Under the pieces are notes generated by a model that ran no database searches, was not told the origin of the DNA, and was given only the letters and a program-made list of their open reading frames with translations. Shown here in pieces: positions 3,066 to 39,752 of a stretch of DNA of 64,000 nt. Location of the stretch: assembly GCA_965637545.1 (NCBI GenBank), contig OZ281496.1:26226001-26290000 (forward strand). The letters run 5' to 3'. Within the stretch, counting starts at the first letter, position 1. Every line of letters begins with the position of its first letter. A program made the translations under genes and the position numbers. Source of the stretch: Phallusia mammillata (taxonomy: Eukaryota).

Positions 3066-5510
3066 TCATTGTTCACAGATTGCCAATTTGTTACTACTAC
3101 ATGGGTGATCATCCATTGCAAAATCTTGAACATAGTAAAGATGGCCACAGTCCCCACTGTTGTTTGGCTCACCAGGATAAAAATCGGTGTTGGTGTTGGT
3201 CCTGGGAACTCCATCTATATATTTCCAGACTCCTTCCCGTTCAAGGTCATTCAAACCAATCCAGTAGTCCCCGGGGAGTCGCGTTTTGATCAAATAGGTA
3301 ACAATCCAGCTTAGTATGTAAAGAATATTATTAATAAAGCCACCCACTACAGAGGTCGTCAACCGTTTTTGCACTGTGTTATTAAACAGAAATTTTATCG
3401 CGGGCCGACATGAAAAGAAAACAAATGTTCAGCAATAAAGTTATGTTACTGGTCATATGAGCTTCTATGCGGTTGACAAAGCAACCGTATGTAAGGATTG
3501 CATTATATAAATCATTTTATCATCCCTGGGATGGACCGACTGCTACAAAAATGTTGCGAAGCATTTAACGTAAAAAAGTAGAAGGCCCGTTAACGAACTC
3601 CTCACAGACCTGCATCCGGTCACCCGGTGGTTGCCGACCACTGACCTATAAAGCATTTGCACGTTTGACAGCAATTTTCACGTATTTATGCCCTAACCTA
3701 AAATAATCCAGCTATGTAACCCCACTGTTACTTACGTGGTTCATCGCAAAGTAATTTTACGAAAAAGCACTTTTTGAGACAAATGTTACGTACTTGCGAA
3801 CAGTCGCATTTCTCATTCCCCAGGTCGCCAAATCTCCACCAATTGACTGACAGTATCTCCTCGCGTTTGCCCAATTTCTTTTAGTGGTCATAATCACATG
3901 GTCATGCTCTAGCACAAAGTTATTACTTAACACTAATACATATTTTATGCAAATACATAACACTTTGATAGATACCTTGCTCACAATGGTTTCCTGAATG
4001 CCAAATGTTGCAAGAGCAGTTGTAGCCAGTACTGGTGTCCGAGCAAGTTCCGTTATGCTGACAAAGGCCGACATTAGTCGAGCAAAAATTGGGCCCTAAA
4101 AGTATTATTTTTAGGAATGTTTAGGAAATACGCTTTTTTGTTTTCTCGTTAAGCTTACGGCATTGTCTTCCATCTCCTGTGTAGTTTGCGTTGCATGAAC
4201 ATTGGAAACTACCCACTGTGTTGATACAAGTTGCGTGTTCATGACAGTTGTGTGTTCCAGTTGAACATTCATCAATGTCTGAAAATAGTTTTTTACCATT
4301 GTCTTTAGGCCAAATAAAATAACGTAACCGATACGATAACATGATAGACTGTGTTTTCGAAAAGTGGCTGAAAAAAGCTTCAACCAATACAACATACATT
4401 ATATTCTGATGCCTACCTTTTCCACAACGAATTCCACTGTACCCTGATGCACACAAACACTTGTAATGGCGGGACTCGATGATGAATAATCCACCATTAA
4501 GACAGGTAGCTAAAGTAAAAGAACGTGATATTGTTTGACAAGTTCGTTATGGGAGGTCAGGGCGTCACACAAATAATATGTACTACTTTTATCCAAGTTC
4601 TCGCTATATAAACGAATACATTTAGTCACGTTTTGTCGTGCAAGGTCACTTTCAAATAAGCTAATGTAATGCAGGAATTCAATATGTAAATAATTTTGTA
4701 AATCCCTTGTGTGTTGCGTGGAAGTTATGTGGATGTCTTCAAGTGAAAACTATTGGCCTACGTCAGTGGTTTCCAACCTGTTTTGTCCTGTTCACTCTTT
4801 TAGTCGATATTCAAATTTAATTCCCCTCTACAAATAGCTGCATTCCTGCCTTAAATCAATGATATGAGAACTTTCTTTTTCTCAGCTCATATATGGCAAT
4901 TGCAGCAATAACACATAGCACAGAAAACCACTAAGAGATTAATATTGGGACACAAATTTCCCCCTACAAATTACAAAATTCCCCCCTGGTTGAGAACCAC
5001 TACGTTGCTCTTTAAGGTTATACAGCACCCATACGCTTAGTTGTTTCCCGTTGTTATTACTAAGTCTATCTTACATAGGGAACCAAGTGCTTCAAAAATG
5101 TGTACTTACTATTGTGTCTTTCCAGTTTAGTAAACGTTCCTACAGCCCCTAACTGGCTTTGAAGACTTGCTGTAGATCTAGAAACCTGTACACAAAGGTT
5201 GTTTAGTTGTTTATCTTTGTTACAAGTGGTTGACTTACCATAGCATAAACACCTATATATCCTACAATCGTTGTCAAAAATAGAGCACAAATAATTCCAA
5301 AAAAACACCGTTTTAAACCTTTTTCCTTTTTCTCAAAGTTGCCCACCAATTTCGCTTGTTGTTCTAGAAAATTATTTTACATTATTTCTTGAAAACCAAC
5401 TTCATTATAATACTTATACGTTGATCCGGAAGTGAAGGTTGACCAAGGTTGCAGCTCTCGTTTTCGGTGGTAATTGTTGTGTATTTAGTGTAAGCCATAT
5501 CACTTGACAT
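3066..5510 (-). CDS. L1: intact type II membrane protein, tail-TM-stalk-3 EGF-CTLD (327 aa)
   Basis: Exons 5510-5420, 5363-5239, 5185-5110, 4509-4417 (4-Cys EGF TCLNGG..CLC..RC), 4278-4159 (cbEGF DIDEC), 4095-3976 (EGF), 3908-3794 and 3309-3066 (CTLD with WIGLND, EPN, MDD and four core Cys). All introns GT-AG, total 984 nt, open frame. No signal peptide and one N-proximal hydrophobic helix. Confidence 0.92.
3350..3643. mobile_element. Old hAT-type MITE in the last intron of L1 (orthologous copies at 8483-8776 in L2 and 30236-30520 in L6)
   Basis: Ends CAG(A/G)GGTCG(T/G)CAACC ... GGTTGCCGACCACTG. TSD is degraded. Same intron position in three genes. Confidence 0.65.
4764..5002. mobile_element. 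hAT/Charlie-like MITE in L1 intron 3
   Basis: Terminal inverted repeats CAGTGGTTTCCAACC ... GGTTGAGAACCACTA. No clean 8-bp TSD found. Confidence 0.55.
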
Positions 5511-8500
5511 TGTTGTAGAACTACGGAGTTATCTCAAACGGTCCCAAAATAAAGTCCTGCACTATTAAACGAAATTGGTTACTCTACTGAATATTTCACT
5601 TCTGCCAACTTAATCTTTTAAAAAACTGACTTTATATCTCTGTCATAAGCGGTATGCAATGACGCTAAATGCAAACGACAGGTTAACCTTGCGCTTAATT
5701 TGTTAAAACTTCGAAAAAAGGTGAAGGGGCGGAATCACCACGATTTAGTGCAAGCAATTTTTATTATACAAGCCTCAACGAGAAACGCAATATAAAACAC
5801 CAATCTTCAATCTTCGCCTATTTATTGGCAGAGAAGGGAAATGCCCAACAAAATGCAGCAATTCAATCAATTCAAATGATTGGTATTTGTTTTTGAAATT
5901 TAAGTTCAAACGCCATATTTTCTCCTCTGAATATGTTTTCCCATGCGTTCTGGGTCAAGATCGTGTTTTCAAGCTTTAGCAATTGCCTTTTTAACACAAT
6001 TCTGACGAAGCCGTGTTATTAACGGTTTGAAACATTTTATGACTGTACAAACTTTTGAAATCCCCAACGACTGTGTTTAATTCAAACATATGTTTGTAAC
6101 GAAAAAGTTTAGAAAACATGAAATTTCATCGTTTTGAAAACAAATGACAAGATATGCATTTTATTGTTATTTACACTAAATAAGTGAATCTAAATTTGCT
6201 TTAGATTGTAACACGTTTGCAACTAAATTCACAATGGAAGGCTTACCCTTCCGGTCAAGATGTTAGACTTTTTTTTAGGAAAATTATTACACTTTTGCAG
6301 CGAACTTTCTCTCTCTCACTGGACAACGGATTACTAACACACCAACGGTGGATATTTAACGTGAAGTTGAAATAGCATTTGATTGAATCCTAAAGTTGCA
6401 GGTAAAATTTATATTGTACACCGGTGTGTAATAAATTACATCGAAAAACATGCTGAGAGAGACTTAAAATATTTTACTTCGTACACCGACTTGTAGGCTA
6501 ACCCTTAAAACGCCATAGAGCCTAACGTTTAAAGTGTTGAGGTTGTGCGGACCGCAATATCCATACTATTACTATTGGCCCTGTTCCAACGTTGCTCACA
6601 ATAATGTTTTACCATCTCTAAACATATCAGCAATACCCTTTTTAAAGACTTTAGTGACCAGCTTTAGCTTACGTAAAATTTAATTGGGAAACCACTGCTC
6701 TAAAAGCAACTGACACTCTTAACAAGTTCTCAGTAATTGTGGACGACATTACCATGCCAACCTTTTAGCCGGACAGGTCCTGTGAAAAGCATTTATATTA
6801 ACATTCACTTATAGGATGCCTATATGCATGAACAATGGTTTGCGATGGTAATTACAAACTGCAAATCTGTCTTGTAGTTGCTCAATTGGTCATAGTTGGC
6901 TCACTAGGATGAAGATCAATATTGGTTGTTGTCAAGAAAACACTATCATGATATATCCGTTTACGCCATTTTGATACGTGAATAAATTTGGCCGCTGCTG
7001 TTTTGGGTATTCAACGTTATGTGCTAGAAGCCCAACATGTTTTTGTTTTTTTCCTGAAAAATTGGCGTGTTCTGAGAATCGATTATATAATTGCGAACAG
7101 CTAGGTATCTCGTTCATTATGTCGCGAAATCTCTATTAAATGACATAATTTCTCGCGCCTGTCCAATTACTTGGTTCTCTGTATTGGCTCAGTTGGCCCA
7201 AATAGCCGCTTCCTATATCGTTTGGCGCGTCACGATAAAATCAGTACTGGTTGTTAACAATGTTCTGCGTCAAGGACGCGAGCCGAGCCAATTCGCGACA
7301 ATCCAATGCAGCTTAAGTTGCGTAATTGGGACATTGAGTGTATATTCTAAAAATATATTGAATGTAAATTTTGTTTATTTTTAACCACGCAGTTGTTTTG
7401 ACAAACTGGTAAAAACCATTTTGCGTGGACGAATAATTTGATTTTTTGTTCTTATCAACCGTGCGAATTTTAGGTACAATTAATGTTTTTTTTTCAACTA
7501 ATACGAAAAACTTATGATATTTCTTTTTCAAAATTAGACTGGGGTTTCTTGAAAACTGTGCTGACCCTTTCCTTTTTAAATGTTAACAAACTTTATTAAG
7601 TTTTTTTTATTCACTATATATTTGCAATGTATTTGGGAAACTGCTCGAACAAAAGCGGCGAATGACAAATACAATTCCATATGCGTTTGTTTACAGACGT
7701 TTACAACCAACCGAATAATTTGCGACAGAGCACGAAAACTCCAATTATTATGTTTGCAGAAAACGATTTGGTAACATACATTATATTTCAATGTTTGCAT
7801 ATTGGTCGTGCTGCGACTATATTTAATCCAACTTTACGCAACAATCTTTCAAAACAAAGTTATAGCAGATTGTTTAAAAGAATCAAGAAATTTTAACATT
7901 GCGCTAAAGGCGACGCCAGTAACTTAAATGTTTACAGTTTCATTTACAAAATATTGCCTCATAATATTGTGACCAGGGATGAACACACTTGAAACTGAAG
8001 TAATTTTATGTTCAAAGTCCACAAACAAATTGAAAAGGTGATTTTGGGTGATTGGTCCGTTTGCACTTGAAATGGTTAACATATAAAAAAATAATTAAGA
8101 AACATGTTAACTAACATGGAAAGTATAAATGTGACTGCCATGAGATTTTAAACGCGTTACCAAGGCAAAAATCGCTCACTAAGGCAATCATTGCTCACAG
8201 ATTGCCAATTTGTTACTACTACATGGGTGATCATCCATTGCAAATTCTTGAACATAGCAAAGATGGCCACAGTCCCCACTGTTGTTTGGCTCACCAGGAT
8301 AAAAATCGGTGTTGATGTTGGTCCTGGGAACTCCATCTATACATATATGTATATCCAATCTCCTTCCCGTTCAATAAGGTCATTCAAACCAATCCAGTAG
8401 TCCCCGGGGAGTCGCGTTTGGATCAAACAGGTAACAATCCAGCTAAGCATGTAAAGAATATTATTAATAAGACCACCCACTACAGAGGTCGTCAACCGTT

Positions 8501-9235
8501 TTTGCACTGTGTTATTAAACAGAAATTTTATCGCGGGCCGACATGAAAAGAAAACAAATGTTCAGCAATAAAGATATGTTACTGGTCATATGAGCTTCTA
8601 TGCGGTTGACAAAGCAACCGTATGTAAGGATTGCATTATATAAATCATTTTATCATGCCTGGAATGGACCGACTGCTACAAAAATGTTGCGAAGCATTTA
8701 ACGTAAAAAAGTAGAAGGCCCGTTAACGAACTCCTCACAGACCTGCATCCGGTCACCCGGTGGTTGCCGACCACTGACCTATAAAGCATTTGCACGTTTG
8801 ACAGCAATTTTCACGTATTTATGCCCTAACCTAAAATAATCCAGCTATGTAACCCCACTGTTACTTACGTGGTTTATCGCAAAGTAATTTTACGAAAAAG
8901 CACTTTTTGAGACAAATGTTACATACTTGCGAACAGTCACATTTCTTATTCCCCAGGTCGCCAAATCTCCACCAATTGACTTACAGTATCTCCTCGCGTT
9001 TGCCCAATTTCTTTTCGTGGTCATAATCACATGGTCATGCTCTAGCACAAAGTTATTTTATTAACACTAATTCATATTTTGTGCAAATACATAACACTTT
9101 GATAGATACCTTGCTCACAATGGTTTCCTGAATACCAAATGTTACAAGAGCAATTGTAGGCAGTACTGGTGTCCAAGCAAGTTCCGTTATTCTTGCAAAG
9201 GCCGACATTAGCCGAGCAAAAGTTGGGCCCTAAAA
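5117..9235. repeat. Segmental tandem duplication A, copy 2
   Basis: Near-identical to 1-~4100. Confidence 0.95.
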
Positions 9236-10810
9236 GTATGATTTTGAAGAAACGTGCAAGAAATTATGATACTTTGCTTCCTAATAAAGCTTACGGCATT
9301 GTCTTCCATCTCCTGTGTAGTTTGTGTTGCGTGTTGGTGACAGTTGTGTGTTCCACTCGTACATTCATCAAAATCTAAAAGGTATATTCAGAGTTAAATA
9401 AGGCACGTTTAGTTTCACACGGTGTAGTTTTGAGTTATGACCTAAAATGCATGGGCTATAGGGTTGACATGAAACAAAATAATGATTTCATTATTTAAAA
9501 TTTTCAAATGATATTTTACCCAATTTCAAACTAACAAATAACATTGCAAGACAGAAATCGCATAATGTTGTAAATATGTTGGCATATTTAAGGCCTTTTG
9601 TAAACGATTCGTGACTTTAACGTTGCTATGAGATGATCGATTTACTTCATGTGTGTCGGTTCCAGTGCAACATAAAACTTTGAAATTATTGGGAAGAAAC
9701 GCGATAAACGCGCTGCTCATCGCCCTAGCTAATAATGTGTGGCATTTCCCAGCTGCTATGTTTCACTTAATAGCTGGCAAAAATCATCTTTTACAGTATA
9801 TGGCTGTTTTTATGCACGCAAAACGTATCAAAGACAGTGTAAATTACAAAGGATCTCACGTGGTCTCCCCGATCCTCAGGAAGTTGGCCGTTGGTCGTAA
9901 CTTACCACATTGTCTTCCATTCGTTCACAAAATGCAACAACTGACTTTATCTGGTGCTATGTCTCATTGTTAACTCGCTTACCACACTGTGTTCCATTTC
10001 CTGTGTAGTTTGCGTTGCAGAAACATTGAAATCCGCCCACTGTGTTGATACAAGTTGCATGTCTATAGCAGTTGTGTGTTTTACTCAGGCATTCATCGAT
10101 ATCTGAAAATAGTTTTGCAATTAACTCATTAAGTTTTTGCATATTTTTGCTTTGGATAAGCACAAATGTGGAAATATCAATATTCATGCAAATAATGTCA
10201 ATAAAGAAACGTTTTACCGTTTTCGCAATGTTGCCCACCAAATCCCGAAGCACATACACACTTGTAATGGTTTAACTCAACAACAAAACTTCCGTTATTA
10301 AGGCAGGTACCTGAATGCAAAACAACAAATACATTATTTATACTGTACTTACTGCTTTGGCGTGAATGTTGTCAAATGGCGTATTATTCGAACTATTATA
10401 TTATTATTCTGTAGATAGTAGATCTAAAATCGTCTTTTTTACCTTTAAGTTGTTTTGAAGGCTTTGAAACCTGAAAATACATATTTCGGTTATTTGATGA
10501 ACACGCACCGTATGAAATGTTTTACTCACTATCACAAAAACTCCAATGAATCCACAAGTCGTTGCTGTAAAAAGGCCAAAAGTAATTCCCAGAAAGAGAC
10601 GTTTAGAAACTGAAACGTTTTTTACAAAATTGTTTGCCAATTGTGTTTCTTGTTTTGTGGGAATTGGAGTAGTTTTGCAATCTACAAAAAAAGCATATTA
10701 AATAAAGCACAGAGAAATAAACTGTCAACCTCAATGACCTGGACATGACTTCGATTACCTTCAAACATACATGTCTGATATCTTGGCTGTACATCTTCAT
10801 CGGACGCCAT
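8188..10810 (-). pseudogene. L2: disabled type II EGF/CTLD receptor gene
   Basis: Exons 10810-10759 (MASDEDVQPRYQTCMFE), 10681-10530 (TM), 10470-10443 (9-aa stalk), 10310-10218 (4-Cys EGF), 10102-9983 (cbEGF), 9374-9295 (cbEGF with a 40-nt deletion), 9229-9110 (EGF), 9041-8927 and 8442-8188 (CTLD). An 8-nt insertion in the last exon creates TAG at 8339-8337 before the EPN motif. Start codon assignment is tentative. Confidence 0.85.
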
Positions 10811-11488: not shown

Positions 11489-12016
11489 CAGTGGTTCCCA
11501 ACCGCCGGTCCGCGTAAATATTTTGCCGGTCCCCAAATTATTTTACTTTATTTATACTTTTTAAAGTAGGCCTATTGCAAAGTTGTTGGTACTTATTGAA
11601 AAGTTGTTGACTGTAAAACTGGGGTAGCTCTCCATCGTTGATATCCGCAAAATTATTTAATAAAGCTTTTGTGCCGTTTATGATTGTTTTTTTTATAAAC
11701 TGCGTTTAGCATTCAACGTTTTTTTTTGTAAAGCAAAGTTATTCTTCACTTTTAAGATTGAGATTCATACTGAAAGCTAAACAACAGCAAACATCCCACT
11801 AATATTGATTTTGTATGTAAATAGATTGGCGTTTTGTTGTTAAAGTTGATTGCCGTTTGGTTGCAATTTTTCGTCCTAAATACATCGGCTATGACTAAAC
11901 CTTGCATTACGTTGCGCAACGACAACTTTGGTGAACAAATAGCATACAAATATCTGTTGCATTTACTACGATCTTTTGTTGCCGGTCCGGTGGCGTAGAA
12001 AGGTTGGGAACCACTG
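11489..12016. mobile_element. Non-autonomous hAT element (MITE), 528 bp
   Basis: TIR CAGTGGTTCCCAAC / GTTGGGAACCACTG with 8-bp TSD ATTTATCT at 11481-11488 and 12017-12024. Confidence 0.9.
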
Positions 12017-12661
12017 ATTTATCTGACCAGTCTCACAAAGTTGTTTAAAACAATTTTCGTATATTTTAGTTGGTCAACCTGAACATACAATGATGTGCGT
12101 TTCCCATATCGGACGTTGGTTTGTTGGCAATGTACCTGGAAATTAAAACAGCAGCACAATGGAAGCTAAAGAGAAACTGGCAGGTTTGTTTCCCAATTTA
12201 CATGTAGTTTACATATTACGTGTACAATGTTGCATGGGCCTAATGTTTTTTTGAAGGGGGTTTTTGAATTGAGTATCCGTTGTTAGTCTTTCATATCACT
12301 TATGTTGATGATGGCATAAGGGCATAAGCGATCGCCATAACGTCTGAGAAAAAATCATGTGGGCTTTTGTATTCATACTGCGACAGTCATAACAAAAGTA
12401 TGATTATTTGGATGAGATGCGCTAATACACACGCGTTCAGACGTGTACAACTGATTAATTGCGACAAAACACGTGACAATTTGTACAGTGTACATTTACT
12501 GAGTTATAAGATCAGGTATCTTTACCAACATGTTACGAAACGGTTTTGGTAATGAAATCTCAGCAACTTTGAGATGCATTGTACAGACAGTATAGATACC
12601 AAAATTATGGGGTAACTTGTTTGTGATATATATGCTTGCTTATGTTGTGGTTCAAAGCGGT

Positions 12662-15448
12662 TTAAAAGAGCCTCTGACATATTGCCAACTCGCGCGCATT
12701 ACAGTTTGTATCATCCATCCGGAATCTGAAGAAGTGTTGCAAGTGGCCACAGTCGCCATCATTGTCGTTGTTGTTTGGTTCACCAGGATAGAAATCGGTG
12801 TTGGCATCTGTCGCTGGAACACCATCAATGTATTTCCAAACTCCTTCCGTTTCAATGTCGTTCATACCGATCCAATAGTGTTGCCGGGGACGCGTTTGAC
12901 GCAAATATGCTACAATCCGCCTAAAGGTGCAAACTTTAGGTGAATTTTACCTGCTATTTACGTTTTATTTTTTACTATTGCATCGAAATAATCAATTTTT
13001 GTCAGGATATTATTACTCAGAACTATTCTAGTTGGGGTAAAACATACAACAGTCAACGTTCCTTTTTTATGTGCTTGCAACAAGCTTGCGTTACGTACTT
13101 GCGAACAGTTGCGTTTCTCATTCCCCAGGTCGCCAAATCTCCGCCAATTGACTGGCAATATTTTCTTGCGTTTTTCCACGTTCTCTTTTGTGTCATAATC
13201 ACGTAATCGAGCGCTAAAACAAATAGATTACATAATCACCCCAAAATTATCTGGATTGTTTAAATTCTCGAAAAGACTAAAGTCATTATACTTAATGCTC
13301 AATCCTATTTTTGTGCAAATACATAACATTTTAAACTATACCTTGCTCACAATGGTTTCCTGAAAACAAACTTTTGCAAGAGCAATTGTAGGCAATATTG
13401 GTGTCCAAGCAAGTTCCGTTATTCTTGCAAAGACCGACGTTAGCCGAGCAAAAGTTGGGCCCTAAAGATATGGTGTTAAGGAATGGCCAAGAAGTTATGG
13501 TATTTTGCTTCCTAAGTAAGCTTACGGCATTGTCTTCCATCTCCTGTGTAGTTTACGTTGCATGAACATTGGAAACTATCCACTGTGTTGATACAAGTTG
13601 CGTGTTCATGACAGTTATGTCTTCCACGTACACAGTGGTCGTCTTCACATCAAATAGCAAAAATGCGTTGCATTACTAACAGTAAATACTTTTCACACAA
13701 TAAATGTACCTGTTTCACAATGCTGGTCAATGTAGCCTTCGCGACAAGAACAGTTATAACTGATATCTGTATCTATGCATGTTCCGTTATTTTGGCATAT
13801 TCCGACATTTTGCGCACAGAAGTCAGCAACTGGTGTACATAAAAAACAACAACACAATAAAACAGTGGTGTTTTATCGATATTTGCTAAAAATGCAAGTT
13901 ACCACAACGCGTTCCTTCTCCGGTGTAATTTACGTTGCATGAACACTGAAAACTAGCCACTATGTTGATACAAGTTGCGTGTTGATGGCAGTTGTGTGTT
14001 CCACTCGTACATTCGTCGATGTCTGCACATAAAACGGCAAAAATGTGTTGCATTAGTAACAACAAATGCTTTTGACACAATAAATATATACCTGTTTCGC
14101 AATACCGGCCAGTGTAGCCATCAAGGCAAGAACAGTTGAAACTAAGATCCGTGTTTAAACACGTTCCGTTGTTTTGACATAATCCGACATTTTGCGCACA
14201 GAAGTCAGCAACTGGTGTACATGAAAAACAACACAATGAAGCAATAGTGTCTTGTCAATATTTACTAAAAATGCAAGTTACCACAACGGGTTCCATCTCC
14301 GGTGTAATTTACGTTACATGAACACTGAAAACTACCCACTGTGTTGATACAAGTTGCGTGTTGATGGCAGTTGTGTGTTCCAGTTGAGCATTCAATAATG
14401 TCTAAGAATAATTTTTCGCGATTTTGTTAGGCCCAATAAAACAACGTACGCGGTTTTATAACAGTATTGCCTCTGTTGTTGGAAAAGTCAGTAAATAATG
14501 TGCCAACCGATACAACATTCGTTCTTAAGCCTACCTTTTTCGCAGCGAATTCCACTGAACCCTGAAGCACACAGACACTTGTAATGACGTGATTCGATGA
14601 TGAATATTCCACCATTAAGACAGGTAGCTAAAGTAAATAAGTATGTTGCTTGATGAATTCATTATAGAAAGCCAAGACTCACACAATTAAGTAAATATAT
14701 ACCTCTACGACTTATATCTAAATTTTTTTTCAATAATTATTAACCAAAAAATTCTTATTGACAAGTGTAAACATTAAAAAAGGTCACTGCAAAATGAGCT
14801 ACTGTTATGCATATAATCAATAATTAAACAGTGTGGCAAATACCTTGTTGAGTGGTAGGTAAGCTTACATGTACTTATTTCAGTTTTAGTACCTTTTGCC
14901 TACACTATTGTAAGCTTGAGTAGCACCCCTACGTTTTTTCGTGACCCACTTTCGACCGTTTTAATAATTAACCAACTCACCAGCTGAAAAAGTTTCGTTA
15001 TGTAGGGAATCCCCCGCAGACAATACAACACCATTGGGTATTTCCAGTTTAGTAAACGTTCCGACATTCCCTGACTGGCTTTGGTGTTTCGAAACCTGTA
15101 GATCTGGGTTGTTAAGTTGTTTTCGTTTTTTTACAAATGGTTGACTTACCATGCCAAAAACACCTATAAATCCTATAATCGTTGTCAAAAATAGAGCAGA
15201 AATAATTCCAAGAAACAACCGTTTTAAACCATTTATATTTTTGTCAAAGTTGCCCACCAATTTCGCTTGTTGTATGGGGTTGCTATGCATTGTTTCGCAT
15301 TCTAAAAAAATTGAATTGCATTACCTGTGAAGACCAAACTCATTAAAATACTTATACGTTGATCCCACGGTAAAGGTTGAACAAGGTTGCAACTCTCGTC
15401 CTCGTCTTCCATTTGTACCAACTTACTGAGAGCAATTTTTGTTTCCAT
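12662..15448 (-). CDS. L3: intact type II receptor with 7 EGF modules and a CTLD (496 or 513 aa)
   Basis: Exons 15448-15358 ([30 protein letters not shown]), 15301-15150 (TM), 15095-14981 (or -15032; stalk), 14627-14535, 14401-14282, 14211-14092, 14022-13903, 13829-13710, 13642-13526, 13461-13342 (EGFs, all phase 1-1), 13213-13099 and 12920-12662 ([18 protein letters not shown]). Open frame throughout. Confidence 0.9.
13526..14401 (-). repeat. Intragenic tandem repeat (~380 bp unit: cbEGF exon + EGF exon + introns) in L3
   Basis: cbEGF exons end at 14282, 13903 and 13526; the EGF exons beginning ADFCAQNVG start at 14211 and 13829; the introns are also repeated. Confidence 0.9.
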
Positions 15449-17652: not shown

Positions 17653-17699
17653 TAGCTATACAAAGTGTTGCAAATCCACCGCTCACAGGTTGCAAATAT

Positions 17700-26876: not shown

Positions 26877-26991
26877 GAAAATGCTGTACAGGCGTTTTCG
26901 TCCACCAGGTTGCATATTTAACAAAAATGTCGTTCAACTGGTGTTAATGTTAAACAAAAATACTAGTTGTTTCTATCCATAACTTGTATTT

Positions 26992-27037: not shown

Positions 27038-27052
27038 TGAATGACGAATGCA

Positions 27053-27735: not shown

Positions 27736-27781
27736 TCGCTGACGTTTCGTCCACCAGAACGGTAGGACTTCTTCAGAGCAA
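27736..27781 (-). ncRNA. Minimal type I hammerhead ribozyme motif, copy 2
   Basis: Identical to 26992-27037. May be the same locus duplicated across the gap. Confidence 0.75.
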
Positions 27782-27834
27782 TGAATGACGAATGCAAGCA
27801 ACAAGCGAAAGGCGCAAGAACAGCGTGATTGATT

Positions 27835-30017: not shown

Positions 30018-32267
30018 AACATAGTAAAGTTGGCCACAGTCCCCACTGTTGTTTGGTTCACCCTGATGAAAATCGGTGTTGGTGTTGGTCGCGGGAACTC
30101 CATCTATATATTTCCAGACTCCTTCGTGTTCAAGGTCATTCAAACCAATCCAGTAGTATCCGGGGGGTCGCGTTTCGATCATATTTGTAATAATCCAGCT
30201 AACCGTGTAGATAATATTATTAATAAGGCCCAATACAGGGGTCGGCAACCGTTTTGTACGGCGCTATTAAACTGAAGTTTTGTCGCAGACCGGCCCAAAT
30301 GTTCAGCTATAAATATATGTTACTATTGAAATAAGTTATTATTATTTGCACTTGCCAATACAACCGTATGTAAGGATTGCATTATATAAATCATTTTATC
30401 ATCCCTGGGATGCACGGACTGCTACAAAAATTTCGAAGCATTTAACGTAATAAAGTAGGCGGCCTGTTAACGAACTCCTTACGGACCTGTCCCGGGCCAC
30501 CCGGTGGTTGCCGACCACTGACCTAAAGCATTTGCACGTTTAATAGCATTTTACACTTATTTTATGCCCTAAAATAATCCAGGTATGTAACCCCACCGTT
30601 ACTTACGTGGTTCATCGCAAAGTAATTTTATGAGAAAGTACAAGTCGAGACAAATGTTACGTACTTGCGAACAGTCGCATTTCTCATTCCCCAGGTCGCC
30701 AAATCTCCACCAATTGACTTACAGTATCTCCTCGCGTTTGCCCAATTTCTTTTAGTGGTCATAATCACATGGTCATGCTCTAGCACAAAGTTCAACACTA
30801 ATTCATATTTTGTGCAAATACATAACACTTTGATAGATACCTTGCTCACAATGGTTTCCTGAGTACCAAATGTTGCAAGAGCAATTGTAGGCAGTACTGG
30901 TGTCCAAACAAGTTCCGTTATTCTTGCAAAGGCCGACATTAGTCGAGCAAAAGTTGGGTCCTTAAAGTATAAATGTTAGTGACATCCAGACATTTGTGAT
31001 ATTCTGTTTTCTAATCAAGCTTACGACACCGCTTGCCATCTCCTGTATAGTTTGCGTTGCATGAACACTGATAGCTACCCACGGTGTTGGTGCAAGTTGC
31101 ATGTTGATTGCAGTCATGAGTTTGAGTTGAGCACTCATCAATATCTAAACACATTAACTCGTCAGAAAGATTGACAGGCTATAACACGTGAACGATTACA
31201 ACTGAGGTTTTTGCAACTTACCTTTTTCGCACCGAATTCCACTGAACCCTGAATCACACAAACACTTGTAATGTCGGGATTGAATGACGAAAAATCCACC
31301 ATTAAGACAGGTGCCTGAATAAAAGACTATTAGTATTTGCCAATGTCAACGGTTCGCATATGGTTGCTAAATCGTCTCAGCATTAAATCTCTTCTCTGAG
31401 GCAGGGGTTCCTATTCAAATCCTGCTAGAGAAATAGTTGAAATGATACTACTGTACATATTTTTATTGTCATTCCAATAGTAATAACTTCCCAGGTTTTA
31501 CTTGTTACAGTGATTTTTTCTTGTGGTAGTAATACAAAAACTAATTAGAGATGCAATATTGTGATGTGGAAAATTTGGCAATAAATGTGGGATAAATGTG
31601 TCCATTAAAAAAATGTTCGTTGTAATGGTAGAAATGAAACTGGGCTTTGCCTTTTTAAACACTTCGTTTTGTGTTGTTAAGTTGCATCAAGCAAGCAACT
31701 GACATTGCCTTTATAAACAGAACAATGCGAACATGTAGCCTACTGCTTTGTATATTTTTTATGCCTTGATAGTTCACGCTAACGTCAAATATTATGTTCG
31801 ATTTTTTTTTTCAAAATATTATTAAAAAAGAAATATTTATATAGTCAACGGTTACCTTTGTGTCTTTCAAGCTTAGTGAATTGTCCCACCTCTCCCAACT
31901 CGTTTTGAAGGTTTAAAGCCTAAAAATCGTGTCTTTGAATGTTCTGTTGAAACTCGCTTTTGAGAAAAGAATACTTACCATGAAATGAACTCCTACAAAT
32001 CCAAAAACGATTGTCAAAAAAAGAGCAAAAGCAATTCCCAGAAACAGTCTTTTCGAAGTCGTAACGTTTCCGGACAAGATTTCGGACAATTGTGACTTGC
32101 CTGGCTGGTCTTGCATTGTTTTGCAATCTAAAAACTCTACGTTATCTCATGATTTATCCAATTATCCCAATTTATGCAAAATACTTACGTTGATCTGGAG
32201 TTGTCATCTCACCAATTTTGCAGTTTTCTTCTTGAACGTCCATGGTTATGTATTTATTTGAAGACAT
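29955..32267 (-). CDS. L6: intact hybrid type II EGF3-CTLD receptor (327 aa)
   Basis: Exons 32267-32189 (MSSNKYITM..), 32127-31979, 31919-31856, 31314-31222, 31144-31025, 30960-30841, 30779-30665 and 30198-29955 ([15 protein letters not shown]). 984 nt, open frame. 5' part is L4-like, 3' part is L1/L2-like. Confidence 0.92.
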
Positions 32268-32928
32268 TTTTTCGTTAGAACGGAGTTTCTTAAAGTGATC
32301 TTTTCTTCGGTCTTTTTACTTTACACTGTCTGGTGATTTTGCCAAGACCCACAATTTACGTTGCAGTATCTACCTTTTTTCAGAGTATTTCAATAATGGC
32401 TGAAAACCCTATTGCCCACTATGTATGTGGAAAATAACGTTGACAAAACTAAATTTGAAAACCGTTTAAAAAACAACGTGACTGTAGACACCTTTCGCTG
32501 CAAATGCCACCAAAACAAAGGCAAGGTAGATGTGGGCCGTTATATAAATGCATCGAAATGGTTTGTTTTTTGCACTAATGACCACAACTTGCCACACGTT
32601 GCGCCAAAGGAAGAGAATGTCGTTAAAATTGCCATAAATCAATCGCACAAAGTGACTGGTTTCTTTGAATTCCTAATGATTGAACTTATACGGTGTGTTG
32701 TTGCCGTCGTAAATTTTTGGCACGCATTTAAACAGTTTCGATATGTCTTGACTAGGGATGTGCTAAAACTGCAAATGTTCTGTTTGGTCGAGCACCGAGC
32801 ATCGTGCATTATGACATCACAAAAAATCCCCTTTCTACGTTTTAGCTCTACAAGGCCTCTTACGTCACCGGCGGTGTTTTATTAAGCTGTACATGCCCAT
32901 AAAGTACGCGTTTTTTCCCAATCTAGTG

Positions 32929-33389
32929 CAGTGCTTGTCAACCTTTTTTGAAACGGTACACCCTTTTAACGTTTACACAAAATTTGTACACCCCAGTAAA
33001 AAAATTATTCAACCCTGTAACTCACTGAATCTGTGGTCCTAACAGAAATGATGATGAGCGCAATATCAACAAGCCATAATCCACAATTCACTTTCTACAT
33101 CTGAAAGAACCACCATTAACAACGATTATCAAGTGAAATATTAAATTATGATGTCACAAATAGAGTTTTGTAACTTAAAATCTGTGAACACTTGAGATGC
33201 ATGTTGTGCCAGGTATTGTACATTCCAGTCAGTCTGTTCTAAAACTGAAACCTGCCTGTTGTGATACCTGGTCATAGGTATATTATATTTTTTGTCTGGT
33301 ACACCCCAGTACACCCCATCAAAGTGGTACACCCTTTAAAAATTATGGTACACCCTGGGGTGTACAATACACCCGGTTGAAAAGCACTG
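32929..33389. mobile_element. Nested hAT MITE with GTACACCC subterminal repeats
   Basis: TIR CAGTGCTTGTCAACC / GGTTGAAAAGCACTG; TSD ATCTAGTG at 32921-32928 and 33390-33397. Confidence 0.88.
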
Positions 33390-33441
33390 ATCTAGTGCAT
33401 TTAAAAAATCATTCGTTTTAGTTCATGGACACCCTTTAGAA

Positions 33442-34183
33442 CAGGGGTGTCAAACTCGTGGGGTTCGCGGGCCACATTGCAGTTTGGGAATTATGCCGAG
33501 GGCCGCATGTAATTTTTAGTCTAGTTTTATACACTTAAACAACCCTTTCGCTTCGACGACCGCATTGCAGATCCTTATTTCACCAACGGCCGCCAATTAT
33601 CTGCTGGTTTTTGTTTAAAAATTACAAGAAAAAGGTATATTATATATATTATATACCATCTACTAACGCCCCAAAAGCGCAGAATAATTTCCAACTTAAT
33701 ATACAGATTAAGCTCCACAATGTGAAGACCAGCAGTTTTAACTCTATTATTACGTCATAATCTATATTGTGACGCTTTTCGTACCTGTTTTTTTCACATT
33801 GTTTGCACATAATTAGGCTGGTAATACTCTTTTCAGTGACACAAAATCTGTTTAGGGCAGTTTAAAAATCAAAAGTTTTGGCAAAGGAGTTTTAATTACA
33901 TCACGCCTGCCAATACATATATTTTAATGTGGCCGTACGGCCGCGGGTTGTACACCCTTGACTGAAACTTTAAGGAACGGCTTAATTACTACCGTTTCTA
34001 TTCATAACATATGAATTTGTATGTATAAATTAAATTTCGGTAAACGTCTGTTTAAATAATAGCTTTAAACTTGAAAAGTAAGAAAAATTTAGTATAATTA
34101 GATAAAAATCTGACAAAATACTACAATTGTTGTTCACTGTTCGTGGGCCGTATTGGAGGGCTTCCGCGAGTTTGACAGGCCTG
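33442..34183. mobile_element. Nested hAT/Charlie-like element
   Basis: Ends CAGGGGTGTCAAAC / GTTTGACAGGCCTG; TSD CTTTAGAA at 33434-33441 and 34184-34191. Confidence 0.85.
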
Positions 34184-34542
34184 CTTTAGAACACTAGTTA
34201 CATGTGTTAACAGGGCATGAATATGCAAATTACCGCTCGGGTCAGTTTGTGCAGCTGCTCGGCCGAGCACCGAGCATTAAAAACAGCGATGCTCGGTACC
34301 GAGTACTCGGGTTCTGGCTCGGCTCGGCCCATCCCTGGTCTTGACCGATTTATCCTGACCGTTAAATTCAAAGCTACTATTGTTAGACTTGAACGGGAAA
34401 AAAACCTTTATCTGCTGTTTGGAATCAATTTTTGTCGTTTTAGAATTGTAAAGTTATTTTTACAAAGGGCTTGTTTGTAGGACTTTGAAGAGCCTAGTAA
34501 TGATGAATAGATTGCATGTGTTTATTGACAGCTATTACCCTG

Positions 34543-34782
34543 TGCAGCGAGTTACTAAGCAATTTACGCTCGTGGGCTCATCTCTGTATTTTGCTCACTC
34601 TTTGCCTTAAGGGTTATTTGTATTCCTGCGTAGTTTAATTACATTCCTTAGTTCCGCTTAAAGTCTCTCATTTTCTTGTTGCTTTCCTCAGTTGTAGTTT
34701 TCGCGTTTACTTGACTTATAGTGTCGATCTCTGTTGTTTAAAGCTAATAAATATTATTACGTTTATGTAGTCAATTACTGCA
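34543..34782 (+). mobile_element. Probable solo LTR, 240 bp
   Basis: Begins TGCAG, ends CTGCA, 5-bp TSD CCCTG, AATAAA at 34746-34751 near the 3' end. Empty site ATTACCCTGTTC in the paralog near 21366-21377. Confidence 0.7.
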
Positions 34783-37338
34783 CCCTGTTCTTGCTAAAAG
34801 CTGATATTGGTTAAAATATTCACGTTACGTAGGCTATTTAGTTTTTTTCGTTAGGTACTGTAGCTTTAAAATCAATTATCTGAACTGCTGCCCAAAAAAA
34901 CATTTTTATGTATTTTAGTTTGTCAACTTGAACTTACAATGACGTACTGTTCTTTCATCGGACATTAGTTTCATTTATGAGTTGGCAACGTCACTGGAAA
35001 TTAAAACAGCAGCAAAATGGAAACTAACCAGAGTTCAAGACTCACAGGTTTGTTTTTTTAATCACATAATTTACATGCTGTGTGTGGTGTTTTATGCATA
35101 ATCAACTTTCAAATAGTCCTTTGAATCGAGTATAAAATGGGTAAAACTACTGAACGTAGTCTTTCACATCGTAAATGATGATGATGGCATAAGCGATTGC
35201 CAAAACGTCTGGTAATAAATCATGTGGATTTTTTCGGTCGTTATTTTTAGGATATTTTGGTGCCAAAAGCGATTTTGGTGTTTGCAATCGTAATGATCGT
35301 CATCAAATTTCCATTGTGCTGCCAAAACTGACATTGGACTGTGATGAACTGTTATCCTTGAATGTTTGTTTAACGTCACACCACCGTACCGCGGGAAAAA
35401 AATCAATTTGTTTTGCTGTATGATCTGTAAGCGTTGAACCCAAGATTGCTTTTGCAAAATCGGTTGAAGAAAGATCGATTCATTTAAATTTGTGCTATAA
35501 AATTTACGACAATATTTTATTAAAATATATTTCTAACATTTGATTTTTAGTACAAACATTTTAAACTTTTACCTGAAAACCATTCATTTACTTCCAAATT
35601 GATGTTTTACGAAATCCATTGATAATTAATTCACACACAAATTGCCTGTTAAGTTACTCACAAACAATCAAATAGCATGTCACACAACATATGTAAGTGA
35701 CATCAGCACATTGAACTGGCGTTGTTAAAAGAATTTAAACACAACAATATCTACGTAAAAGTTTCACCATAACTTGGTCACATAAGCAAACAAAACTTAT
35801 TTAATTAAATGTAAACGCTTTTTATGCAGTCTTTCTGATAAGTTGTTTGCAAAACAAAACCAATAAAACAAACACGTTTTTGCTCCTACCAAATAAATCA
35901 CCTTCAACCTTCTAAACTATATTCGAAAATATATATTTTGCTGTGTGTGTACAAGAGTTATAAACGGGTCTGAAATTGAGCCCGACCCCAGCCCGTACCC
36001 GAGAATACAAGCGCGAATCCCGACCCGAACCTGAATCGTTTTTAAAAAACTTTTTCAGGCCCGAAACTCTGATTGACAGGCCTTTACAAAGATGTTTTCA
36101 GAAAGACAAAGAGAACAATCAGAAAAGACTATAATAGACAATGGTCTTAACTGTGGCGTTTTCGAGTCCATCATAGCTACTGAGTTAGTTAATTTTGTTT
36201 TTTAAATTACTGACACACCGTTAGAAGTCAGACCCGAATCAAGCCCATTTTTTTAAGAAACCTAAGGCCGAACCCCCCAAAATCCCGTTCTGCGTAATGC
36301 TTTCCTGAGTAAAAAATATTGCAAGAGCAACTGTATCCAATATAGGTGTGTCTAAGCATGTCCCGTTATTCTCGCAAAGTTGGCCTCTGGATTTTTTTAA
36401 TATTGTGCAGTTGTGTCCAGGAACACAGAACAAAGAAGGAGGTAGCCATGACGCAGTGTACATTTGTTGTTTTAGCACTTACCGCACTAATTTCCATCTG
36501 TGTAGTTTGGATTGCAGGAACATTGGAAACTACCAGCAGTCGTTTTGTGCAGTTATTAAAATAAGAGTATGTACTTAATGGCAGATGTGAAGTCTTTCAT
36601 TTTGAAGTCGTACAAAACATTTGGTTCAATCTAGTTTTCCTTTTTGGTTGTTTAAACTGTATTTTGACTCAAGTATCTTAGTCGGGACTACAAGTGTCGT
36701 TCCCTATGGAATTGTAAACCTACGATTTGAAAAAACTAGAAATTGGGACAATAACTAAGACACGATTTTACACATTTTGTCCTGTGTACTACAGTCTTTT
36801 TCAAAATTACTTGGGTGGACTTTAGTAGTTTTGCGCGCCAAATTTTTTTTGTAAACTTAAGGATTACAAGTGCTTTCAATTTATGAATTATGGTTGTGGT
36901 TGCAAGGTTTAAATTACCGTTACCGTTTGTCTTTGAACAAATGTTTGTGTAACTGCAGCGCTGTTGCGTGGACAAAAAAGCAAAAAATGCTTTTCTACCG
37001 TACCAACTGTGGCGTTGTATCTCAATAATTTGTTGTAAAACTAACATAAAGGCTTTTTGTGCCTAATTGATCAAAGAATAATACAAAAAATGAAAAAATT
37101 AAGTATTTTGACAATTTTTCGCTGTAGTGGTTGTGTTGGTCATATTGGAACCAACATATTGGCCAAAACGCATACAGTCGTTTATTTTTCTTGCAAGTAA
37201 ACCGACAACTTGCGATAAAGCACACTCCAATGTGCAGTAGCAAATTAAATCCAATATTGTCTCTTTTATAGCGACACAAATTGTATGTTAAATACTCTGT
37301 TACATAATGATTTTATTAGAAAAAAACCTACTGTAGGC

Positions 37339-37699
37339 CAGTGGCGTAGGCATCCAAAAATTTTGGGAGGGGCCAAATGATTTGTTGTCTAATACAACTT
37401 TTTGCTAACGCTCAGCGTGCTTTTACCAAACACGTGACTTGCCAAACTGTGGTTCGACGGAACAGCCAAACGCTTTATTGATTTATTCCATGTCTACATA
37501 AATCAAAAAAGCATGGATTTCGGCTTACAACTTGGTGACAAAAGTCATTTTTGGTAATAAATATATTCCTTTGATAGTTGAGAGACGAAACCACAATGAT
37601 GAGGGACGAAACTACACTAAATTTAAGTTTATCAATGTAACACTTTGAAAATTTGGGAGGGGCCATGGCCCCTTTGGCCCCTCCCTGGCTACGCCTTTG
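37339..37699. mobile_element. hAT-type MITE, 361 bp
   Basis: Ends CAGTGGCGTAGGC / GGCTACGCCTTTG; TSD CTGTAGGC at 37331-37338 and 37700-37707. Absent from the paralogous site near 23730. Confidence 0.85.
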
Positions 37700-38091
37700 C
37701 TGTAGGCTACTTAAAAAATAAGGATTTCGTCAAAACTGTAAAAGTGCATAGGCCAATAGACAAAAGCATAGCCGCATATAAACATAATCTTATCAAAATG
37801 TCCCTACTTTACAGAAAAATGATAATAATTAATCTTTAATAATATACAAAATCAAACTTAATCACACATTGGTTTCTGCACGCCTGAACTAAGGCTAAAT
37901 GTGCATGCATTCTATCAGAATTATGACAAATGAAAGACGCTTTCGTGACTGCAGTACAGTACATGCAAAAACAACCTAACACTATAGCAAGGACTTTACT
38001 TAATTACAACGCAACTGGTTTCATAAAAAGTGTATGGGTTTTACACATTAATCGATCACATTTAAAACGTTATGTTATTTTGGTGTGAGCC

Positions 38092-39752
38092 TTAAGTAGT
38101 TCGCTCGCAGATGGCCAACTTGCGCCGTCCACATGGGTGGTCATCCATTTTGAATCCGGTACCATACAAGTAAGCGCAGTCGGAACCAGCCACGTCGTTT
38201 GGCTCACCAGGAAAAAAATCGGTATTGGCTCTTGTCATTGGAACACCGTCAATGTATTTCCAAACTCCTTCTTCTTCAAGGTCATCTAATCCAACCCAGT
38301 AATCCGCTATTGGGCGCGTTTGGAGCAAATTTTCGATAATCCAACTTTAGATTTAAAAGCAAACAAATAAAGTACAGTAAATGCAACGGGTTGTTTTATC
38401 GCACAAAAAGTGGAATTCTTGGACCTGCAAAGGGCCGCTATGGAATTCCATTTAAAAAGCGTTTAATTCTTTCTTCGTCTTTCGTTGATGTTACACAATG
38501 TTTTATGTGTCTAATAAACTCGGTACCTGCGAACAGTTGCATTTCTCATTCCCCACGTCGCCAAATCTCCACCAATTGACTGACAATATTTCCTTGCGTT
38601 TGCCCAATTTCTTTCAGTGGTCATAATCACGTGTTCAAGCTCTAATACAGAGGTGTTTGTAAAACCAAATCATATTTTGTGCAGTTTCATAACGCCACCA
38701 ATAATACCTTTCTCACAATGGCTTTCTGAGTACCATACTTTGCAAGAGCAATTGTAGGCAGTACTGGTGTCCAAGCAAGTTCCGTTATGCTGGCAAAGGC
38801 CGACATTAGTTGAGCAAAAGTTGGGTCCTTAAAGTATAAATATTAGAGACATCCAGACATTTGTAATATTCTGTTTTCTAGTCAAGCTTACGACACCGCT
38901 TGCCATCTCCTTTATAGTTTGCGTTGCATGAACACTGGTAGCTACCCACTGTATTTGTGCAGGTTGCGTGTTGATTGCAGTCATGGGTTTGAGTTGAGCA
39001 CTCATCAATATCTAAACATATTTATTGGTTGGTAAGACTGACAGGCCCATAATCCGCGAACAATTTCAACTGAGGTTTTTACAATTTACCTTTTTCGCAT
39101 CGAATTCCACTGAACCCTGAATCACACAAACACTTGTAATGTAGGGATTGAATGACGAAAAATCCACCATTAAGACAGGTGTCTGAATGAAAGACAAATG
39201 GTTGCAAAAGCGTCTCAACATTAAATCTCTTCTCTAAGTTTAAGCTAACGTTAAAGGTTATGTTCGAAATGTTTTTCGATTAAAAATTAATTTACCACTT
39301 TTATTAGGCACCTATAAGAACTATTAATAGTCAACGGTTACCGTTGTGTCTTTCAAGCTTAGTGAATTGCCGCACCTCTCCCAACTCGTTTTGAATGTTT
39401 AAAGCCTAAAAATCATGTCTTTGAATGTTTTGTTGAAACTTTTTAGAAGAAAAAATACTTACCATAAAATGAACTCCTACAAATTCAAAAACGATTGTCA
39501 AAAAAAGAGCAAAAGCAATTCCCAAAAACAGTCTTTTAGAAGTTGTAACGTTTCCGGTCAAGATTTCGGACAATTTTGACTTTTTTGCCTGGTCTTGCAT
39601 TGTTTTGCAATCTAAAAAACTCTACGTTATCTCATGATTTATCCAATTATCCCAATTTATGCAAAATACTTACGTTGATCAGGAGTTGACAGCTCACCAA
39701 TCTTGCAGTTTTCTTCTTGAACGTCCATGGTTATGTATTTATTTGAAGACAT
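38092..39752 (-). CDS. L7: intact type II EGF3-CTLD receptor (330 aa)
   Basis: Exons 39752-39674 (MSSNKYITM..), 39611-39463 (TM with internal Glu), 39405-39342, 39182-39090, 39011-38892, 38827-38708, 38641-38527 and 38344-38092 (EPNDVAGSDC..MDD). 993 nt, open frame. Confidence 0.92.

Follow-up and report, generated by a model that had tools for sequence, protein, structure and literature searches.

The 64,000-nucleotide stretch analysed here, referred to as the window, comes from the ascidian Phallusia mammillata (NCBI GenBank assembly GCA_965637545.1, contig OZ281496.1, forward-strand positions 26,226,001 to 26,290,000). Motif and exon searches across its 64 kb identified a tandem array of related receptor genes on the minus strand, running from high to low coordinates. 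The encoded proteins consist of a short N-terminal tail, a transmembrane (TM) segment, a region encoded by at least three epidermal growth factor (EGF) exons, and a C-terminal C-type lectin domain with an EPN motif. The gene labels L0 to L7, all on the minus strand, are deduced from the motifs and coordinates of an earlier reading made from the letters alone, hereafter the sequence-only reading. The mosaic nature of genes in this array is confirmed: their front and back halves have different histories, and L1 and L6 are the hybrids in question.

Organization of the receptor array

Five of the copies, L1, L3, L4, L6, and L7, are intact. As corrections to the sequence-only reading, L2 is frameshifted and L5 is a fragment. 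The features of the locus are collected in Table 1. In L1, all exon borders are AG/GT and the 335-codon frame is uninterrupted. Its tail exon begins MSSDMAYTKYTTI and is followed by a TM exon, a short stalk exon, three EGF exons (EGF1 to EGF3), and two lectin-domain exons (CTLDa and CTLDb), which end EPNNSGDC...MDD...AICEQ before the stop at 3066. The tail and TM exons of L0 are 96–97% identical in protein to those of L1. In L2, one extra nucleotide is present in CTLDa (9066-8927) and three and eight extra nucleotides in CTLDb (8442-8188), the first exon is disrupted, and an extra copy of EGF2 (9374-9295) carries a 40-nt deletion; the TM, EGF1, and EGF2 exons (10681-9978) are open though divergent. 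The EGF2-EGF3 pair of L3 is triplicated, giving a stalk of seven EGF domains, and the internal repeat (13535-14014 and 13912-14393) spans about 378 nt at 84% identity, all in frame. L5 is 95.7% identical to the L7 exon, and a 10-nt deletion removes its last conserved cysteine. It was also considered as an alternative last exon of L6 and dropped, as that cysteine is lost and the frame runs on.

The EGF exons measure 93, 120, and 120 nt and are all of phase 1-1. The Pfam models Lectin_C, EGF, and calcium-binding EGF (EGF_CA) are matched on separate L1 exons, and the last exons of L1, L4, L6, and L7 score 39–44 bits against Lectin_C (PF00059), for which the cut-off is 22.6. The lectin cysteines at RYC, DCG, PC, and AIC are kept in L1, L3, L4, L6, and L7, and the last of them is lost in L5. 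At the Ca2+/sugar site, EPN is found in all heads and WND is replaced by MDD. Inspection of the sequences shows a Met start, about 50 residues, KR or KKR, and a 23-residue hydrophobic stretch, and no signal peptide, which indicates that the array proteins would adopt a type II membrane topology with the lectin domain membrane-distal.

Table 1. Genes, junctions, repeats, and neighbouring features in the window (positions in window coordinates; genes on the minus strand are given from start to end)
Feature	Position	Strand	Description
L0	394 to 1	-	5' part only, cut by the window edge; tail exon 394-305 with MSSDMACTKYTTI, TM exon 260-99 (tblastn)
L1	5510 to 3066	-	Intact hybrid, 335 aa, 8 exons
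L1 exons	5510-5420, 5363-5239, 5185-5110, 4509-4417 (EGF1), 4278-4159 (EGF2), 4095-3976 (EGF3), 3932-3794 (CTLDa), 3309-3066 (CTLDb)	-	
L2	~11184 to 8188	-	Pseudogene as assembled
L3	15448 to 12662	-	Intact, 496 aa; three EGF2-EGF3 modules; tail without tyrosine motif
L4	20631 to 18505	-	Intact, 335 aa; tail MSSNKYITM
L5	24361 to ~24080	-	Orphan CTLDb exon of L7 head type, without upstream exons
L6	32267 to 29955	-	Intact hybrid, 333 aa
L6 exons	32267-32189, 32127-31979, 31919-31856, 31314-31222, 31144-31025, 30960-30841 (EGF3), 30797-30665 (CTLDa), 30198-29955 (CTLDb)	-	
L7	39752 to 38092	-	Intact, 330 aa; tail as in L4/L6; head with EPNDVAGSDC
L1 junction	~4010-4000	-	nt 86-96 of the 120-nt EGF3 exon; identity to L2 changes from ~85-91% to ~98.7%
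L6 breakpoint, L4-type to L1/L2-type	30943-30925	-	nt 18-36 of EGF3 exon 30960-30841
L6 core tract	30925-30665	-	3' part of EGF3, short intron, and CTLDa; 95-97% identical to L1/L2, Kimura two-parameter distance (K2P) 0.027-0.048
Lectin-domain intron with ~290-nt insertion	L6 30199-30664, L1 3310-3793, L2 8443-8926	-	
Recent direct repeat, copy 1	1-4197		L1 3' half, intergenic sequence, and L0 5' end; continues left of the window
Recent direct repeat, copy 2	5117-9333		L2 3' half, intergenic sequence, and L1 5' end
Older segmental duplicate, copy A	18989-24556		L4 5' half, intergenic sequence, and L5 head; collinear with 30654-38541
Older segmental duplicate, copy B	30654-38541		L6 5' half, repeat-rich insert 32753-34782, intergenic sequence, and L7 head
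Inverted repeat, left arm	24545-26522		Antisense copy of the end of the L6 last exon and 3' flank
Inverted repeat, right arm	30017-27837		L6 3' flank and last 60 nt of the L6 coding sequence
Inverted repeat, spacer	26509-27796		~570 nt; contains the N gap
N gap	27053-27252		200 N; intergenic, 2.7 kb past the L6 stop
Lectin-domain exon relics downstream of L4	16416-18103	-	With stops; tblastn hits 18103-18008, 17652-17545, 16505-16416
P1, P2 (relatives)	41305-48971	+	Lectin exons 43974-44186 (P1), 48750-48968 (P2)

The mosaic genes and their junctions

A self-BLAST search showed that positions 1-4197 recur at 5117-9333 as a direct repeat with a period of 5116 and an identity of 97.4% including gaps. 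The sequence-only reading had proposed that L1 shares its 5' half with L0 and its 3' half with L2, and this repeat bears the proposal out, with only the 5' part of L0 present in the window. Over the first 394 nt, L1 and L0 are near-identical (K about 0.008). Compared with L2, L1 looks unrelated above 4300, differs at 19, 19, and 9 sites per 100 nt across 4300-4001, and then shows about 1.3 substitutions per 100 nt from 4000 down to the window start. The rise in L1-L2 similarity from about 92% in EGF3, also described earlier, was recovered as well: the EGF3 exon, taken whole, is 92% identical.

L6 changes its closest relative in the same exon. By sliding identity, it is 94–100% identical to L4 from 32570, 500 nt above the start codon, to about 30955, and 95–99% identical to L1/L2 thereafter. 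With L4 and L2 as parents, the triplet maximum chi-square is 647, a value that none of 2000 permutations reached, and the informative sites divide 753:16 on one side of the switch and 85:234 on the other. The breakpoint interval obtained in this way agrees with the switch near nt 35 of EGF3 (about 30926) that had been read from the letters. The L1 and L6 junctions both lie within the EGF3 exon, about 60 nt apart and in register, and the open reading frames of both genes are unbroken across them, which argues for homologous rather than random joining. Downstream of its junction L6 is not uniform. Identity to L1/L2 over 30925-30665, put at 95–97% or 97–98%, drops to 85% at the CTLDa donor site (about 30665), and beyond the core tract the K2P is 0.17 in the intron, 0.13–0.16 in the last exon, and 0.32 in the 3' flank, with the intron and last exon 85–88% identical to those of L1/L2. 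L6 shows at least two tracts: either an older head was overlaid by a short conversion tract, or the real donor is located outside the window.

The lectin-domain intron provides a further marker. It measures 484, 484, and 466 nt in L1, L2, and L6, respectively, versus 178–227 nt in L3, L4, and L7, and the insertion of about 290 nt is a good shared marker of the first three genes. This insertion had been described as a diagnostic miniature inverted-repeat transposable element (MITE). Its sharing among L1, L2, and L6 stands, whereas the MITE label is weak: a 15-nt inverted terminal pair (30236-30250 and 30506-30520) occurs in the L6 insertion only, and an inverted-repeat search of the L1 intron found no pair. 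A diverged copy of the insertion lies at 47128-47329, and k-mer depth is raised over 30500-30700.

Phylogenies of the separate parts, which the sequence-only reading had named as a check, conflict between the 5' and 3' exons with strong support. In the tree of the tail-TM-stalk region (segment A), (L0, L1, L3) is separated from (L4, L6, L7), both with support of 100/99, and L0 and L1 are grouped at 99/98. From the 3' part of EGF3 to the first lectin exon, (L1, L2, L6) at 95/96 is set against (L4, L7) at 99/99, and the last exon gives (L1, L2, L6) at 99/98 and (L5, L7) at 99/99, leaving L4 outside both groups. Imposing the head grouping on the tail segment lowers the log-likelihood by 164 units (approximately unbiased (AU) test, p 1e-58), and the tail grouping, when imposed on the last exon, lowers it by 101 units (AU p 2e-43). 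The synonymous divergence (dS) between L1 and L6 is 1.07 in the N-terminal block versus 0.09 in the lectin domain, and that between L4 and L6 is 0.09 versus 0.75; this tenfold contrast excludes an explanation by rate. The 5' block of L4/L6 has a K2P of 0.038, and the 5' introns of L4, L6, and L7 are 90–100% identical, while the introns of their heads are not alignable. In protein, the identity between L1 and L6 is 83% for the lectin domain and 87% for EGF3, versus 45% for the tails, and the tail-TM-stalk blocks of L4, L6, and L7 are 90–98% identical, with heads at 65–68%. Related heads on different tails (L1 and L6) and one tail on three heads (L4, L6, and L7), both recognized at the outset, are thus found in the measured identities. 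P1 and P2 served as a control; all four of their blocks are 80–82% identical by self-BLAST, as expected of plain whole-gene duplicates with uniform divergence. When L7 was tried as a recombinant of L4 and L6, no significant breakpoint was obtained (792 of 2000 permutations), and L7 is better read as an unbroken descendant of the tail-B/H4 gene.

The two copies of the older segmental duplication mismatch at 3–10% per 250 nt, apart from a near-identical 500-nt patch at 19489-19988. The homology common to L4, L6, and L7 ends at the 3' end of the CTLDa exon (18989, 30654, and 38523, respectively), and L5 is truncated at 24545-24556, which is again the CTLDa exon end. The core consisting of EGF3, a 43-nt intron, and CTLDa, about 400 bp in length, is the only part that is 75–99% identical among all copies. 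The sequence-only reading had taken the last EGF exon as the recombination hub. The L1 and L6 junctions do lie inside that exon, but the L4/L7 head boundary, the identity step of L6, and the truncation of L5 are placed at the CTLDa end, and because of these other boundaries the hot region is the whole EGF3-CTLDa core of about 400 bp, which is wider than one exon. Such similarity is a requirement of homologous recombination, and it may have promoted the repeated exchange as well as resulted from it; no evidence of a special recombination signal was seen.

In three DNA runs, the k-mer depth of the insert upstream of L6 (32753-34782, in copy B of the older duplication) exceeds that of its flanks hundreds of times. 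The insert also contains many internal joints of deletion type, and it probably represents nested high-copy transposable elements that interrupt the duplicate. A 714-nt segment of the L3-L2 spacer (11655-12368) recurs at 96% identity at 26169-26882, 27253-27626, and 27837-28189, that is, in both arms of the inverted repeat and in its spacer, and diverged copies of its 3' half are present in other spacers (21489-21843, 34897-35233, and 40491-40839). This segment looks like part of an ancestral repeat unit or a mobile piece.

Origin of the mosaics and the state of the assembly

Judging from these comparisons, the mosaics probably arose by repeated homologous unequal crossover together with gene conversion in a tandem birth-and-death array, a reading in which we place fairly high confidence. 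Non-allelic homologous recombination between neighbouring paralogues would have taken place repeatedly in the EGF3-CTLDa core, and each unequal crossover would duplicate a head, the intergenic sequence, and the 5' half of the next gene, leaving an in-frame hybrid in the middle. L1 would be the product of a recent event (about 1.3% divergence), in which the segment from the L2 3' half to the L1 5' half corresponds to that from the L1 3' half to the L0 5' half. In an older event (about 5–7% divergence), the segment from the L7 head to the L6 5' half would correspond to that from the L5 head to the L4 5' half, and its hybrid would have consisted of the L6 5' half plus L5. L6 would later have gained a head related to L1/L2, through one junction in EGF3 that is in register and another that is non-homologous and tied to the 2-kb inverted duplication. 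The segment 24557-30653, which holds this head, its flank, and the inverted duplication with the gap, would now part the L6 5' half from L5, and the former L6 head would have been left as the decaying L5 exon. Short gene-conversion patches would have been added afterwards. We infer this order of events, and the crossover and conversion mechanism, from the sequence; the older event fits because L4-L6 homology stops at 30654 and L5-L7 homology at 24556, and the two pieces together make one L7-like gene. The hallmarks of unequal crossover are present, namely abutting direct repeats, in-register junctions, and conflicting trees, with the left copy of the recent repeat cut by the window. Displaced heads are also found, in the form of the L5 exon and of older head relics downstream of present heads.

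The assembly around L6 requires separate consideration. The arms of the inverted repeat are 98.7–99.2% identical, and the left arm joins L5 at a 4-nt microhomology (TTCG), at the last three bases of the former L5 first lectin exon. A self-complementary, hairpin-like element of 161 nt (28941-29101, 94% paired) lies inside the right arm. The gap is flanked on each side by a 544-nt sequence (26509-27052 and 27253-27796); the two flanks have the same orientation and are 100% identical, and they resemble contig ends that overlap more than the borders of a missing stretch. No open frame of more than 31 codons reaches either edge of the gap, and none of the compared gene models crosses it. The interval 26992-27781 falls largely within this redundant sequence and the gap, so that motif counts there may be doubled by the assembly.

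Public reads were consulted as Logan unitigs of at most 490 nt from runs carrying the same organism label in three studies; the L1 region is not covered. Unitigs match all parts of L6 in runs of the three studies. A 139-nt unitig in run X2 has about double depth and terminates precisely at 30017, the boundary of the arm. A second copy with a different continuation would produce such an end, and the inverted duplication is therefore probably real in another individual. In run X1, the unitig at 30914-31151 carries L7-type letters at 30975, 30980, 30998, 31014, and 31071 and L6/L4-type letters further upstream; five of its eight differences are known, and it may represent a different conversion patchwork in that individual. 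The best-matching runs share about 0.6 of 31-mers, which corresponds arithmetically to a difference of about 1.6% between individuals.

Several observations weigh against a history of repeated exchange as set out above. No unitig (of at most 490 nt) bridges any junction, and the divergence of the L1 repeat (1.3%) does not exceed the approximately 1.6% between individuals, which leaves room for a retained-haplotype artefact. The 3' half of L0 lies off the window, and an L0-type origin of EGF1 to EGF3 in L1 is a presumption. The head of L6 is 13–17% from L1/L2 as against 3–5% in the core, so that a single event does not explain L6, and its true head donor is not in the window. In addition, L6 lies 2.7–5 kb from a contig end, beside an unusual inverted repeat, and a query with the L1 last exon returned no database protein or transcript for L1, L4, L6, or L7. 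An alternative is an assembly artefact: L1, L6, or both would be chimeric joins, or retained haplotype copies placed in tandem, and the inverted repeat around the gap a fold-back error at contig ends. The slight divergence of the recent repeat falls within the likely allelic range, the identical gap flanks are redundant sequence that was kept, the 99% identical arms adjoin the gap, and the junction of L5 with the left arm is non-homologous, all of which favour such an error. We nevertheless consider it improbable. Both L1 and L6 lie inside gap-free sequence, and a false join would need a switch within about 100–250 nt of only 91–95% identity. The L6 head differs by 13–17% from all other heads of the window, and the 5' half of L6 differs by 3.8% from L4; both halves are therefore separate loci and not sequence used twice. 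L2 also differs from L1 by three frame-breaking indels, and the unitigs for all parts of L6 and the double-depth end at 30017 speak against an error of assembly.

A history of whole-gene duplication alone, followed by fast diversifying selection on heads or tails, has next to no probability. It could draw on the clustering of variable residues around the EPN loop of the lectin domain, but the tenfold contrast seen in the protein recurs at synonymous sites and in introns, the heads of L4, L6, and L7 have unalignable introns where the 5' introns of these genes are 90–100% identical, and the 5' and 3' groupings conflict beyond a difference in branch length. Repeated crossover and conversion thus remains the reading that we prefer.

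Tails, relatives, and known receptor systems

The sequence-only reading had gone further and viewed the exchange as a matrix combining ligand specificity with signalling output, as in vertebrate paired receptors. The tail motifs are TKYTTI in L0/L1, NKYITM in L4/L6/L7, and TKYTTM in the Phallusia transcript P0060 (of the A type, described below), and L3 has none. The A-type and B-type tails align, with the tyrosine at the same position (A-type MSSDMAYTKYTTITTENESCNLG...PDQ versus B-type ...PDQ), and they are homologous. TKYTTI fits the pattern TxYxx[VI] of an immunoreceptor tyrosine-based switch motif (ITSM) and YITM fits YxxM, yet both also fit the generic sorting motif YxxPhi, a signal found in many endocytic type II lectins; the tyrosine motifs of all these tails match it no less well than any SH2 motif. 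A canonical immunoreceptor tyrosine-based inhibitory motif (ITIM; [SIVL]xYxx[IVL]) was not found in the tails of L0, L1, L3, L4, L6, or L7, with L0/L1 having Thr at position -2; no immunoreceptor tyrosine-based activation motif (ITAM; YxxL/I(x6-12)YxxL/I) was found in the array proteins, and no Lys or Arg in any TM segment. L7 alone has a TM Glu, located mid-membrane (exon 39463-39611) where L4 and L6 have Gly (IVFEFVGV versus IVFGFVGV), which is possibly a damaging change or a partner-binding residue. The ratio of nonsynonymous to synonymous divergence (dN/dS) is 1.5 for the L1-L3 tail block, based on few sites.

A functional paired-receptor matrix, in which heads are re-assorted with differently signalling tails (an ITSM/ITIM-like TKYTTI versus a PI3K-type YITM), is unlikely in our estimate. 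It draws on the similar ectodomains of L1 and L6 (83% in the lectin domain, dS 0.09, lower than in many vertebrate pairs) on dissimilar tails, on the fit of the two motifs, and on the dN/dS of the L1 and L6 heads, which is raised to 0.86, again over few sites. The tyrosine lies 6–10 residues from the N-terminus, a spacing also known from many type II lectin receptors of vertebrates. Among solved structures, the nearest lectin domains are those of the CLEC4 group, which contains the DCIR/DCAR pair. Against these points, the two tail types are homologous and have their tyrosine at one and the same alignment position, the +3 Ile/Met varies even within the A type, as in P0060, the tyrosine of L3 is lost, and all tail variants also fit the endocytosis signal. 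Neither a canonical ITIM nor an ITAM nor a basic TM residue is present in the array, only L7 has the TM Glu, L2, one of the presumed parents, is a pseudogene, and L5 is a fragment. The reading as paired receptors is therefore unsupported by the sequences at hand, though the array may yet act in that manner.

Relatives of the array are found within and outside the window. P1 and P2 have a tail type of their own (MS[YH]NRGRRNT.NAYIV; 41305-41700 and 45520-45860, plus strand), again with a tyrosine near the N-terminus. Stop-containing EGF exon relics lie downstream of the L5 and L7 heads (22723-22964 and 36297-36540), and these, like the lectin exon relics downstream of L4, are remains of earlier gene copies. 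A query of a library of 1.84 billion representative proteins with the L1 last exon returned mostly multi-lectin proteins and one protein of the same length and layout, P0060. This protein combines an A-type tail (MSADMAYTKYTTM) with a head of a fifth kind, and its closest relative differs by part: L1 for the N-terminal block (69%), L3 for EGF1 (97%), and L6 for EGF3 (95%). A word search based on P0060 found only four Phallusia proteins; P0060 and three LCCL-EGF-lectin proteins are Phallusia mammillata entries named "CLEC4F-like", and no contigs encoding P0060 are on record. An RNA-like run (X15) yielded no more than 55 nt of the conserved CTLDa exon, with extra letters that match a paralogue of the L3/P0060 type and not L6. 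In the Phallusia proteins P0151, P0152, and P0038, LCCL domains are followed by the EGF2-EGF3-lectin cassette, including its invariant 11-residue motif, and the cassette has thus been joined to unrelated N-terminal modules too; P0152, which has a hydrophobic N-terminus, may be secreted. Among solved structures, the lectin domain is closest to CLEC4C, CLEC4D, CLEC6A, DC-SIGN, and langerin, and the EGF part resembles the EGF domains of Notch and NELL.

Comparable exchanges are known from vertebrates. In the KIR, Siglec-11/16, and CEACAM families, gene conversion or crossover re-assorts ectodomains and tails, according to the accessible parts of the reports (PMC2768862, PMC5701461, PMC2832619, PMC5290243). 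As in those accounts, tandem paralogues of the Phallusia array exchange binding and signalling parts, exon trees conflict, and ages are mixed. Unlike the array, with its homologous tails, those families as covered there have proven opposite signalling (ITIM versus a charged TM segment with an ITAM adaptor), and their domains are Ig rather than lectin and EGF. Type II lectin-like receptors are also known from ascidian blood cells: BsCD94-1 of Botryllus and CiCD94-1 of Ciona are membrane proteins with a C-type lectin-like domain, and CiCD94-1 reportedly lacks carbohydrate binding (PMC5465252). The portion of that report available to us describes them as single genes and does not mention EGF domains, whereas the array is multi-gene, with EGF stalks and EPN (PMC5465252).

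With the CLEC4 family (DC-SIGN, langerin, Dectin-2, MCL, BDCA-2, DCIR), the array shares a type II layout, a single C-terminal EPN lectin domain, a tail tyrosine, and clustering of the genes; it differs in its neck, which consists of at least three EGF domains where the CLEC4 proteins have a coiled coil or short stalk, in MDD for WND, and in having no basic TM residue. An identity of about 30–35% would be expected, and orthology is not implied. Selectins and thrombomodulin/CD93 likewise carry a lectin domain on EGF domains, but they are type I with the lectin domain N-terminal, so that the polarity of the array is reversed, and as far as tested these are unrelated families. The symmetrical EGF exons, duplicated or swapped in frame (as in L3), follow the phase 1-1 rule of exon shuffling; unlike classical exon shuffling, the recent junctions of the array lie inside an exon and in register, as in homologous rather than intron-mediated exchange. 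No TM-EGF-lectin type II architecture, and no description of such a family, was found in the literature searched.

It is conceivable, though we hold it to be rather improbable, that the array is the ascidian counterpart of the vertebrate lectin-receptor complexes, in which crossover at the core would keep making head and tail combinations that segregate as copy-number variants and tails would route the same ligand to different responses; if this were true, the receptor repertoire would vary between individuals. The L1 duplication, which does not exceed allelic divergence in age, and the possible patchwork in the X1 unitig would fit such a reading. As a mechanism, such exchange is textbook, and an immune or "paired" meaning is conjecture. 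As far as the assembly can be relied on, the locus, which holds an undescribed family of ascidian receptors, adds a new example to a known evolutionary process. It shows a tandem receptor family building domain combinations in a tunicate, a member of the sister group of vertebrates, with dated halves, relics, and conversion patches. Its value is mainly descriptive, in providing gene models and a candidate locus for copy-number variation and for the evolution of ascidian lectin receptors.

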